A stretch of DNA of 64,000 nucleotides from Bugula neritina (lineage: Eukaryota; Animalia; Bryozoa), in the NCBI GenBank assembly GCA_964035545.1, contig OZ037772.1, positions 6,618,889 through 6,682,888 on the forward strand, given 5' to 3'. Below, piece after piece: positions 8,391-64,000 of the stretch. The position numbers and the translations under genes are program-made. Within the stretch, counting starts at the first letter, position 1. The number at the start of each line of letters is the position of its first letter. Under the pieces are notes generated by a model, which saw only the letters and a list, made by a program, of their open reading frames with translations, was not told the DNA's origin and ran no database searches.

Positions 8391-11300
8391 ATGGCTGCCC
8401 AGCAACTACCAGAATGGTATGAATGTGGTTATTGTGTCTCTAGAAGGGATGACATGAGAGATCCAAGAGAGCTGTCTTGTCAGCATGTATTCTGTTTGAG
8501 TTGTATTCAAGGACATTACAATAAACATAAAACTGTGACATGCCCTACTTGTGGGTGAGTAGAAATTATCCAGCGTGTACTAGATTGATATTTTCTAAAT
8601 TCATCCAAGCAATTATTTTAAATTGTCTAAAATATCTTGAAGCTATTATAAATGTGCAAGATACTGCACAAGCAAATCTTGAGTATTACCAGTTACATGT
8701 AGTGTGATCTCGAAACATGTAATGCAGTAAAAGCTTTACAATAATGATGGTGCTATGCTTTTCATATTTATTGTTAATAAAAAATATTCTCCACTTTTGA
8801 AGCCATGCTAATAGTGATGGTGGTCAAGTATTCAAGTCCTGCCTAGAAGTCGTTGGTATATTTCTTTGGTATTTTTCACATAATGGAATGTCATGAATTA
8901 TACTGGAAACATTATGGGCTGTAATGAAATTCTTACAGAGAAGTGTATGGCTCACTGCAGTTTGAGGATTTACCTAAGGTTGCCATAGCAACTGGTGATT
9001 CTAGTACTCTGTACTGTACAGCTCATGGATGTCAAGGTCAAATAGCTACATGTTACTGTGTGAAGTGTGAAGTTATGTTCTGTACTCAACATCAACAGGT
9101 ATGTTATACCTCAACCACTGCATGTCCAAATTCCAAGGCCGGGAATCAGTACAATATTGTGTTACTTGTAAATATCTGTTTTGTTTTGAATATCAACAGG
9201 TAAAATAATGCACGAGCAAATTTATAATAAATTTCTTAGATGTCACACTCCAAAGCTATACACACGTACACATGCGCACACATGCGCACAGAAATGCACA
9301 CACACGCACACACATGCGCACACACATGCACACACACGTGCACACACACACACCTAGTATATGAATTATAAATGGTTGCTACACACATGCCCACACACAC
9401 ATGCACACACACACATGCACACACACACATGCACACACACATGCACACACACATACACACTTACACACTTAAACACTTACACACACACACACACATGCAC
9501 ACACACACATGCACACACACATACACACTTACACACTTGAACACTTACACACACACACACACACACACACACACACACACACACACACACACACACACAC
9601 ACACACACACACACACACACACACACACACACACACACACACACACACACACACACACACACTTTCACCTATTATATGAATTATACATGGTTGCTACACG
9701 TATGCACGCACACACATGCACACAAACACATGCACACACACACATGCATACACACATGCAAACACACACATGCACACACACATACACACTTACACACCTA
9801 ACTACTTACACACACACATACACACACCTAGTATATGAATTATACATGGTTGCTACACACATGCACACACACATGCACACACACACATGCACACACACAC
9901 GAATACACACCCTCACATGCACACACGCATACACACTTACACACTTGAACACTTACACACACACACACACCTAGTATATGAATTATACATGGTTCCTACA
10001 CGCATGCACACACACACATGCACACACACATACACACTTACACACTTGAACACTTACACACTTGAACACTTACACACACACACTTACACACACACACACA
10101 CACACACACACACACACACACACACACACACACACACACACACACACACACACACACACACACACACACACACACACACTTGAACACTTACACACACACA
10201 CACACACACACCTAGTATTTTAATTATACATGGTTGCTACACGCATGCACACACACATGCACACACACACATGCACACCCACATGCATACACACGTGCAA
10301 ACACACACACATGCACACACACATACACACTTACACACTTAAACACTTACACACACACACCTAGTATATGAAGTATACATGGTTGCTACACACATGCACA
10401 CACACACACATTCACACACACACATGCACACACACACATGCACACACACACATGCATACACACATGCACACACACACACACACACACACACACACACACA
10501 CACACACACACACACACACACACACACACACACACACACACACACACACACACACACACACACATGCACACACACTCATGCAGACATACAAATGCACAAA
10601 GGCATGTATGTGGAGACATTTGTCTGTGAGTGCAAGTATATGTATATGTGCATTTGCATGTGCAAGTGTGTCTCAACTTTCTTTTACATTTTTTGTTTCA
10701 AACTTTTTGATACTGCTTCAAATAAAAATATTGGAGTTATATGGTTATCTATTTATGTTAGATTCCAACGAAATTTGTTTTTTATTTTAGGCACACAAAG
10801 CAATGTATGGTGAGTCTCACAAGGTAGTGGACATTGATGTCTACAAGAGATCACCTGCCAGCTACAATAAACCAACATGTGAACATCATCAAGAGGTTCT
10901 AGTGAGAGCTTGCAAGAAATGTGACAAACTGATCTGCTTTGAGTGTGAGATTGACGGATATGACTGCACAAGTATGTAACATAGTGTTCACATATAAAAC
11001 AGAAAAGTAAAATTGAAAGTATTGCTTCATGGTTGCAATACAGAGTACAATTTCACTTAATAAAAAAAACAAAATTGCTATATTATAGTTTTTGCAGTTT
11101 ATTTAAATAATATAAAATCATTATAAAAATAAAATTGCGAGATTTTTTGTCATCTACTGATCTGTAGATGAACATTAGGTGCGTATTTTAGCTAAAAACA
11201 AATTGTGTTAGCAATGCAGTGTATCTTTTGATTTAACAGTCATTTTGTGCCAACTTTCTATGAGCTCAGCAGTAGCTGTGTAGATTTACAAGACTATTTG

Positions 11301-63400: not shown

Positions 63401-64000
63401 CATGCATATATACATGTATGCATCTTATATTCACATATAACACACATAAATTGCACATATGAACATATATAATAATTATAGGAGTTACAGACATCTATAA
63501 GCAAAAATGTACAAAACTTATAGAAATTGCATCAGATACCCATCTAATTTTCTTAGTTATAGGTTTATGGTAACTATCATAAAATCAGGAAATATTTTTG
63601 AGCAAATAAATGCTTTCTAATAAAAATTGATTTCTAATAAACAAACTGAATGATTAACTCTATATTTCATCTTACAGGTCAAAACACAAGTAGACTGTTG
63701 AATCTCAGTCTAGTAATAGTTCCTTCTTCACTGAGATTCATATCTGAACATGAGACAAGTATTGGGTGTTACTCAGCCAATCACAGACAAGACGGTGACA
63801 TACTCATAGGTACTTATAATGGAATACAGTTACTGAGCAGAAATAGTAATGAACTGAGTGGATACAGTACAAGTGAGAAGATAGTAACAGGAGTAGTTGA
63901 GACCCTTCAGAATGCATTCATTCTACACAGAGAAGGTGACATATCTAAGGTAGACATGTGTTTAGCTGGTGACATCACAAAGAGACAACAACTGTTTCAG
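51500..64000 (+). CDS. TRIM-type RING-Bbox-Bbox-CC-beta propeller protein, array copy 4 (3' partial, runs off window)
   Basis: Exons 51500-51669, 51930-52089, 52548-52728, 61220-61419, 61876-62152, 63678->64000; frame is open as far as visible. Intron 3 contains a 7.6-kb Gypsy element and intron 5 a LINE fragment. Confidence 0.85.
53287..53684 (+). repeat. 5' LTR of element C (398 bp)
   Basis: TGTAATG...CACTACA with terminal inverted repeat and internal AATAAA; differs from the 3' LTR by 10 substitutions and one 21-bp indel (hand count). Confidence 0.95.
53728..54577 (+). pseudogene. gag: Gypsy gag (frameshifted near 54110)
   Basis: ORFs 53728-54120 (PPIFSGEEDVEQFI capsid-like motif) and 54032-54577 with the CCHC knuckle CWRCGSGGHFIRSC; split by a ~23-nt deletion relative to element B. 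Confidence 0.85.
54748..59071 (+). pseudogene. pol: Gypsy pol (protease, RT, RNase H, integrase) with several frameshifts and stops
   Basis: LDTG protease; WRFCVDY, LPFGL and YLDD in RT; DTDAS and TDH in RNase H; integrase with C-x2-C, VAVDLVGP, GNGVVERNN and GPY motifs; spread over at least six partial ORFs. Confidence 0.9.
60438..60856 (+). repeat. 3' LTR of element C (419 bp)
   Basis: Near-identical to 53287-53684; terminal CA mutated to CG; followed by the TSD ATAG. Confidence 0.95.
62260..62990 (-). mobile_element. RTE-clade non-LTR retrotransposon (LINE) 3' fragment
   Basis: Minus-strand translation gives KINIQK, AETWTL..QVKNLSAFMMR and NEEILR..LPSMADIL..NLRRVSHVHR..GKRNGGQLRLRLED, typical of the region C-terminal to RT in RTE elements. 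Absent from the homologous intron of copies 1 and 3. Confidence 0.75.

Follow-up and report, generated by a model that had tools for sequence, protein, structure and literature searches.

The 64,000-nucleotide stretch of the Bugula neritina genome considered here (the window; contig OZ037772.1, positions 6,618,889 to 6,682,888) carries four paralogous genes of the TRIM class, each predicted to join a RING finger and B-box modules to a C-terminal beta-propeller. These genes are members of a tandem array that extends well beyond the window, and among the copies of this array one face of the propeller has diversified, so that every copy compared has its own combination of loop sequences. Structural modeling identifies the family as a divergent form of TRIM-NHL protein. 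With modest confidence we favor the reading that the window is part of a young tandem TRIM-NHL array in which the diversity of one propeller face has most probably been kept by conflict with pathogens or mobile elements.

The extent of the family was determined by searching the 216-Mb assembly that contains the window, in all six frames, for copies of exon 6, the exon that encodes most of the propeller. The search recovered 34 full-length, stop-free copies on the window's contig, located on both strands between 6.63 and 7.21 Mb (~600 kb) and 68-83% identical to copy 1, the first gene in the window. Three truncated exon-6 fragments also lie within the array. A second cluster of about a dozen copies, with 44-56% identity and with a TAG in two of them, is present on the same contig at 9.31-9.42 Mb, and weaker relatives occur on six further contigs of the assembly. 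Among 1.84 billion representative proteins only 157 relatives were found at E ≤1e-3, mostly as exon-sized fragments. With 34 copies in 600 kb and a second cluster, the family is a lineage-specific tandem expansion. An initial annotation, made from the letters of the window, had described a tandem TRIM array of four genes; the TRIM assignment is borne out by Pfam matches to the RING and B-box, and the array holds 34 intact exon-6 copies rather than four.

Gene models were rebuilt from the open frames and splice sites across the window. The four genes lie on the + strand, start at 8391, 17724, 38896 and 51500, and are all open. Each consists of seven coding exons, which encode in order the RING, a B-box1-like module, B-box2, two putative coiled-coil/linker segments, propeller blades 1-5 and blade 6, and the predicted products are ~593-596 amino acids long (~594 for copy 1). 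Exon 6 had at first been regarded as the final exon, and a six-exon model with a terminal exon 6 was dropped after a conserved donor and an in-phase seventh exon were found. A GT donor directly follows the first base of the Gly-223 codon in all 31 genomic exon-6 copies, and in 30 of the 31 an in-phase exon 7 of 41-45 codons is located behind an AG acceptor 175-850 bp downstream. The genes therefore possess seven coding exons. The acceptor AG of exon 6 is retained at 29 of the 30 loci examined. The residues after Gly-223, which could be mistaken for a C-terminal tail, represent intron read-through, and the "sites" 224 and 226 that were flagged there by codon model M8 are void.

In the effector half of the protein, exon 1 of copies 1 and 3 exceeds the cut-offs of the Pfam models zf-RING_2, zf-RING_UBOX and zf-C3HC4, and exon 3 scores 24.2 bits against the zf-B_box cut-off of 24.1. 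Exon 2 is rich in Cys and His and has no Pfam match, so that B-box1 is only putative, and the ~158 amino acids of exons 4-5 matched no Pfam family. The Pfam NHL model likewise gave no match above threshold on the window proteins and weak matches in 13 of 102 relatives. However, a profile built from close relatives only (A2) matches the NHL repeats of PknD-derived designer proteins (Pizza/PknD, E as low as 4e-16), TRIM3 (5e-7), Thin and TRIM2 (5e-5); these matches run through the last blade only.

The AlphaFold2 model of the exon-6 product (pLDDT 94) contains 19 strands arranged in five blades. A five-bladed propeller is ruled out by the conserved donor, by exon 7 and by the model of a homologous domain, as follows. 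The nearest named relative is a protein of the bryozoan Watersipora subatra (XP_067933727, hereafter P0046), annotated as "E3 ubiquitin/ISG15 ligase TRIM25-like", which is 35% identical over the propeller and matches RING and B-box models. Past the exon-6 match, P0046 has a C-terminal tail that shares 34% identity (E=5e-6) with exon 7 of copy 1, and by this homology exon 7 would supply the strands that the exon-6 model lacks. The complete C-terminal domain of P0046 was modeled as a proxy for the spliced window proteins, and this model has 24 strands, forming six blades closed by the N-terminal strand. Structurally, it comes closest to the NHL domains of TRIM2, Brat, Mei-P26 and Lin41 (Z 25.4-25.8), and over the larger set of TRIM2, Brat, Mei-P26, Lin41, NHL-2 and TRIM71 the Z-scores are 24.5-25.8 with 237-263 residues aligned. 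Clusters of mollusc RING/B-box/NHL-like proteins in the ESM Atlas have the same fold (TM 0.77-0.79). Because of the profile matches, the six-bladed model of P0046 and its structural matches to TRIM-NHL proteins, the family is assigned, at the level of modeled structure, to a divergent TRIM-NHL class without a filamin domain, in keeping with the NHL-type propeller proposed initially. A search for hydrophobic segments in the window proteins revealed none (Kyte-Doolittle means over 19 residues peak at 1.0-1.44, and the N-terminus is hydrophilic). This agrees with the earlier statement that signal peptide and membrane segments are lacking, and is consistent with a soluble intracellular protein.

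The location of the variation was examined in an alignment of 31 genomic exon-6 copies, with residues classed from the DSSP string of the exon-6 model. Gaps occur in only 5 of the 226 core columns, so that loop lengths are fixed. There are ten variable patches in exon 6, one for each D-A and B-C loop of blades 1-5, and in copy 1 they comprise residues 25-31, 44-47, 66-68, 86-92, 111-115, 128-133, 153-156, 170-171, 191-194 and 211-215, residue 1 being the codon at 13763. The six patches listed in the initial annotation (residues 25-29, 44-47, 66-68, 111-114, 153-156 and 211-213) are all correct and are among the most variable in the 31 copies, but the list was four patches short. Mean amino-acid entropy is 1.12 bits in the D-A and B-C loops (41 residues), compared with 0.39 in the A-B and C-D loops (35 residues) and 0.44 in the strands. 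Loop sites flagged by M8 are distributed in the same manner, with 12 of 41 in the D-A/B-C loops versus 0 of 35 in the A-B/C-D loops (Fisher p=2.8e-4), and the few strand residues flagged by M8 adjoin D-A or B-C loops. Distant homologues show the same bias (2.94 bits in the D-A/B-C loops versus 1.87). In exon 7, inspection by eye suggests a like pattern, the variable positions apparently lying just ahead of the first strand of blade 6 and between its second and third strands. From the meander topology of the blades, the D-A and B-C loops are predicted to share one face. The variable patches thus fall on one side of the propeller, as had been surmised, and it is this face that has diversified. 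In solved TRIM-NHL proteins ligand or RNA is bound on the D-A/B-C face, and in a working protein the ligand-binding face is normally the most conserved.

The loop patches are also strongly mosaic. Each of the ten exists in 10-25 variants among the 31 copies, all 31 loop combinations are unique, neighboring patches show no association, and loop motifs recur in copies that are not adjacent. Since the combinations are unique and the patches unlinked, gene conversion or independent change yields combinatorial surfaces. A four-gamete test resembling the pairwise homoplasy index gave p<0.0005 for the exon-6 alignment, in which 27% of the pairs of informative sites no more than 30 nt apart are incompatible, and this alignment is therefore strongly recombinant. 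Simulated four-gamete profiles did not reproduce the observed incompatibility profile at any tract length tried. The 3' end, from the third strand of blade 5 through blade 6, behaves in another way. It exists as two old sequence types (noted in loci L013, L019, L022, L024, L028, L029 and L030 and at 32482-32609 of the window), which stay linked across the intron, in contrast to the freely mixing loop patches.

Expression was assessed with Logan contigs from RNA-seq runs labeled symbiont metagenome and from runs of the same organism, all unchallenged, which were compared with copy 3. Contigs from the RNA runs cover exons 3-6 of copy 3 and almost no intron. Two GT..AG joints, 40244->40852 and 41052->41891, coincide with the predicted borders of exons 3/4 and 4/5; the second of these has flanks of up to 141 nt and is present in three runs. 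One contig splices exon 5 onto an exon-6 start of paralogue type. Transcription and splicing are thus shown at the level of the family.

Is the variation of the propeller face driven by selection? A Nei-Gojobori comparison of copies 1 and 3 finds, among the 54 codons of the RING exon, 2 with replacement and 7 with silent changes, which matches the hand count of the initial annotation exactly. Exon 6 has 38 replacement codons (13 of them multi-nucleotide) and 8 silent codons of 225, against 37 and 8 of ~223 counted before, and the ratio of replacement to silent rates (dN/dS, or omega) is 1.26. In the other five pairs of window copies dN/dS is 0.65-0.88 in exon 6 and 0.05-0.53 in exons 1-5. Codon models were then fitted with code written for this analysis, which reproduced the IQ-TREE likelihood of model M0 within 0.5 units and in which relative branch lengths were fixed. 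For exon 6, M0 gave an omega of 0.81, and the comparison of M7 with M8 gave twice the log-likelihood difference (2dlnL) as 331 under a single tree, falling to 164 when four segment trees were used and to 89 with eight; under M8 ~13-15% of the sites fall in a class with omega 2.4-3.7. In exons 1-5 (12-16 genes), omega is 0.35, no positive class appears and the M7/M8 2dlnL is 3.3, compared with 78 for exon 6 of the same 13 genes. The RING, with an omega of 0.18, is indeed conserved.

A test designed to be robust to recombination employed disjoint nearest-neighbor pairs, which were picked within short segments by means of codons that did not belong to the class under test. Per codon, silent single-base differences are equally frequent in every class (0.042-0.051), whereas replacement differences are 3-4 times commoner on the variable face than elsewhere, and ~12% of the comparisons there involve multi-base replacement codons, versus 1-2% elsewhere. 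Pairwise maximum likelihood gave an omega of 1.5 for the variable face, with a likelihood-ratio statistic against 1 of 5.9-6.3 (p 0.012-0.015), and under every segmentation 0.41-0.45 for the opposite loops and 0.58-0.64 for the strands. At sites picked from distant homologues omega was 1.4-1.8, and p varied with the segmentation between 0.004 and 0.11, which is suggestive only. Two further measures were discarded. A dN/dS of 1.37 at the previously listed patches in the other 27 copies is biased, as these patches had been picked for variability in related copies, and the number of distinct amino acids per site is not diagnostic, as star-like neutral trees give as many. Overall, positive selection on the variable face is moderately supported.

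Several results weigh against a stronger conclusion, and against the interpretation that we build on it. When data were simulated under the null, with omega capped at 1 and with independent simple genealogies, M7/M8 2dlnL values were 58 and 83 for tracts of ~5 codons and 9-17 for longer tracts. Because null simulations reach scores similar to those observed, M7/M8 and M1a/M2a were dropped as sufficient proof of selection. With a free synonymous rate, the ratio beta/alpha on the variable face is 1.2 with eight trees (not significant) and 1.5 with four (p=0.014), compared with 0.42 for the opposite loops and 0.59 for the strands. Few single sites pass a test of the fixed-effects-likelihood type, which is low in power, and truly neutral simulated sites range from 0.7 to 1.4. 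The column-bootstrap 95% interval of the pairwise omega, ~1.0-2.4, touches 1 and is compatible with neutral loops. The expectation that dN/dS would exceed 1 with recombination handled is moderately supported: M7/M8 is significant with four or eight trees and the pair omega is 1.5, yet the null simulations and this interval leave room for neutral loops. The assignment to one face follows from strand order rather than from measured positions in the model. Most of the RNA contig pieces differ from copy 3 by 5-10%, which places transcription at the level of the family rather than of each copy, and the RNA cover spans exons 3-6, the junction of exons 6 and 7 lying outside the compared stretch. Finally, the argument for an immune role is one of analogy. 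There is a methodological warning in these results, namely that in such arrays the scores of standard site models can be reproduced without positive selection.

The account that we favor is the following. An array of at least 34 genes would have formed by birth-and-death, and its products would be soluble TRIM-NHL proteins, predicted to be E3 ubiquitin ligases. A conserved effector half, with the RING, two B-box-like zinc modules and a putative coiled coil, would be joined to a specificity domain in the form of a six-bladed NHL propeller. The scaffold and one face of this propeller would be held by purifying selection, and on the opposite face the side chains of the D-A and B-C loops would vary freely at fixed loop length. 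Mutation together with frequent short-tract gene conversion may shuffle the loop variants, giving each copy a unique combination, and the result would be a germline repertoire of ligases that presumably differ in substrate specificity. By analogy with TRIM5 and the fish finTRIMs, the diversity would most probably be kept by conflict with pathogens or mobile elements. We infer the selection for diversity, the E3 activity and the nature of the ligand, and, from the analogy, the immune role. A more specific form of this idea, which we consider unlikely, holds that the hypervariable surface corresponds to the face with which NHL domains bind RNA and that the arrays are germline-shuffled, sequence-specific sensors of RNA (or capsids), coupled to a ubiquitin ligase and directed against viruses or retroelements, with gene conversion between the tandem copies as the generator of diversity.

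The results may also be explained without selection for diversity. In a young and redundant family the fold would be constrained, the loops would drift at an omega of ~1, gene conversion would mix the variants, and the apparent selection would be an artefact of recombination and of the assumption of a constant synonymous rate. This is possible, although we find it doubtful. In its favor, null simulations reach large M7/M8 scores, and fits with dual-rate classes are nonsignificant or marginal; moreover, a hand tally of the most variable codons gives a minimum replacement:silent ratio of ~3.3:1, where the rough neutral expectation is 2.4-3.8, and star-like neutral simulations match the observed number of sites with at least 5 amino acids. 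Yet the point estimate exceeds 1 in every recombination-robust analysis (1.3-1.6), and the free positions of the variable face must lie higher still, because the tested class includes constrained turn residues. The mean replacement diversity at the 18 most variable sites, 0.49, is higher than in any of the 104 null simulations (maximum 0.43). Indels usually accumulate in neutral loops, whereas the loop lengths here are fixed; the loops of the opposite face are constrained as much as the strands; and the face that varies is the one with which solved TRIM-NHL proteins bind their ligands, where conservation would be expected.

The diversified proteins might have an endogenous function instead of one in defense, either as RNA-binding regulators with different mRNA targets (in the germline, in development or in zooid differentiation) or in colony recognition. 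Brat, Mei-P26, Lin41 and NHL-2, to which the structural similarity is closest, regulate mRNAs, and the present results contain no link of the family to infection. Nevertheless, we regard such a role as quite unlikely. TRIM-NHL genes with known regulatory roles exist as single copies and are highly conserved, and dozens of near-identical scaffolds with unlinked, free loops and an omega of at least 1 would be unexpected if the targets were fixed and endogenous. The known proteins of colonial allorecognition reside at the cell surface, whereas the window proteins have neither signal nor membrane segments. The array might instead consist of decaying pseudogenes, its variation reflecting relaxed drift after duplication. 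Partial units and the three truncated exon-6 fragments are of the kind that this would produce, and copy 4 has an intronic retrotransposon and two extra RING codons. But all 34 full-length exon-6 copies are open, splice signals are retained, omega is 0.4-0.6 in the scaffold and 0.18 in the RING, and spliced transcripts exist. For the family as a whole this last explanation is already contradicted, and we assign it a very small probability.

The four genes of the window, all on the + strand and derived from splice-site models, are organized as follows. Copy 1 (8391..14888), whose RING and B-box are recognized by Pfam, comprises exon 1 (RING, 8391-8554), exon 2 (B-box1-like, 8939-9098), exon 3 (B-box2, 10791-10971), exons 4 and 5 (putative coiled coil and linker, 11595-11794 and 12629-12905), exon 6 (the N-terminal closing strand and blades 1-5, 13761-14429) and exon 7 (the last strand of blade 5, blade 6 and the stop, 14755-14888), which is in phase after an AG acceptor. 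Intron 2 of this copy repeats, at 9071-9205, the 3' end of the B-box1 exon out of frame, and this duplicate has a GT donor of its own at 9199; use of the first donor, at 9098, yields an open product. A 1.5-kb CA-rich block of low complexity (9230-10720) occupies the same intron. Copy 2 (17724..32609) has long introns 3 and 5, with exons 1-5 at 17724-17887, 18358-18517, 19220-19400, 24427-24626 and 25160-25436, exon 6 at 31635-32306 and exon 7, which carries the second sequence type of blade 6, at 32482-32609. Its intron 4 opens at 24627 with GC instead of GT (GCAAGT) and would be a GC-AG intron. Copy 3 (38896..44157), for which the model is joined by RNA-run contigs and a Pfam match to the RING, has exons 1-5 at 38896-39059, 39476-39635, 40066-40246, 40854-41053 and 41892-42168, exon 6 at 43028-43696 and exon 7 at 44024-44157. 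Copy 4 starts at 51500 and continues to the end of the window at 64000, with exons 1-5 at 51500-51669, 51930-52089, 52548-52728, 61220-61419 and 61876-62152. Its exon 6 runs from 63678 to ~64346, past the window end at 64000, and exon 7 (~64689-64822, locus L015) lies beyond it. In the RING exon of copy 4 (51500-51669), the final pair of cysteines encloses two additional codons (CPIKTCG versus CPTCG), which alter the spacing of the final zinc ligands.

Elsewhere in the array, at L043:5694-9995, L039:4554-9999 and L034, there are partial units. In one, a second exon 6 sits 2.9 kb after the exon 6 of its neighbor with no exons 1-5 between them; another, behind a neighbor's 3' end, consists of exons 5-6 alone; and a third, missing exons 4-5, bears a deletion within exon 2. 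They may represent fragments of pseudogenes or else alternative 3' modules. Within copy 4, intron 3 contains an LTR (long terminal repeat) retrotransposon (53237-60596) bounded by direct repeats at ~53237-53445 and 60385-60596. It encodes a CCHC zinc knuckle, aspartyl protease, reverse transcriptase, RNase H and integrase, and is probably broken, because these domains are scattered over several reading frames; related fragments are found at ~2-6 kb and 32.6-37 kb of the window. Intron 3 of copy 3 contains a dispersed repeat of 230 bp (40420-40655), with at least 859 candidate copies of ~96% identity on all large contigs. This repeat often adjoins an inverted 70-bp partner and has very high depth in the RNA-run contigs, and an Rfam search with it returned no family above threshold. 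It may be a young element resembling a miniature inverted-repeat transposable element or a short interspersed nuclear element. Long (CT)n tracts occur at 1494-1797, 8170-8290, 37118-37365 and 38333-38850, and closely precede the RING exons of copies 1 and 3.

It is instructive to compare this family with known systems. In textbooks, TRIM-NHL proteins stand for regulators that are conserved and encoded by single-copy genes. With TRIM2, TRIM3, TRIM32, TRIM71/Lin41, Brat, Mei-P26 and NHL-2 the Bugula family has in common the order of a RING, a B-box and a coiled coil (putative in Bugula) followed by a six-bladed NHL propeller. It differs from them in that the known genes are single-copy and evolve slowly, whereas here there are dozens of tandem copies in which the canonical binding face is variable. 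Furthermore, no filamin domain is located between coiled coil and propeller, and the window proteins are below the Pfam NHL threshold, with a recognizable NHL motif in the last blades only. P0046 of Watersipora resembles the family in its RING and B-box matches and in the blade-6 tail common to both. Its name, "TRIM25-like", results from automatic annotation and suggests an SPRY protein, which P0046 is not. The Atlas mollusc clusters, also annotated automatically, have their fold in common with the Bugula family. Literature searches for bryozoan or mollusc TRIM-NHL expansions, or for variation in such relatives, found nothing relevant.

Two groups of TRIM genes have been distinguished (Sardiello et al. 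2008, PMC2533329). Those of group 1 are conserved, carry varied non-SPRY C-terminal domains and are represented in invertebrates; those of group 2 are fast-evolving and clustered, have 6-7 exons and an SPRY domain, and are stated to be absent from invertebrates (Sardiello et al. 2008, PMC2533329). Like TRIM5alpha and the fish finTRIMs, the Bugula family forms lineage-specific tandem clusters of small genes with 6-7 exons, in which the RING and B-box are conserved and variation is concentrated in exposed loops of the C-terminal specificity domain. It is unlike them in that this domain is an NHL propeller instead of B30.2/SPRY, and in that positive selection is only moderately supported in the Bugula family, which is known from genes and transcripts. 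The NHL-class TRIMs we take, on our own reading, to be members of group 1. If the diversity is adaptive, it would represent a convergent solution to the problem of intracellular non-self recognition and an entry point to bryozoan immunity, which to our knowledge is almost unstudied. In sum, an invertebrate NHL class exhibits behavior that has been described as a vertebrate SPRY speciality, with large tandem arrays, a frozen effector and a reshuffled surface specific to each copy: the Bugula family combines an NHL architecture with the genomic and evolutionary habits known from group 2.

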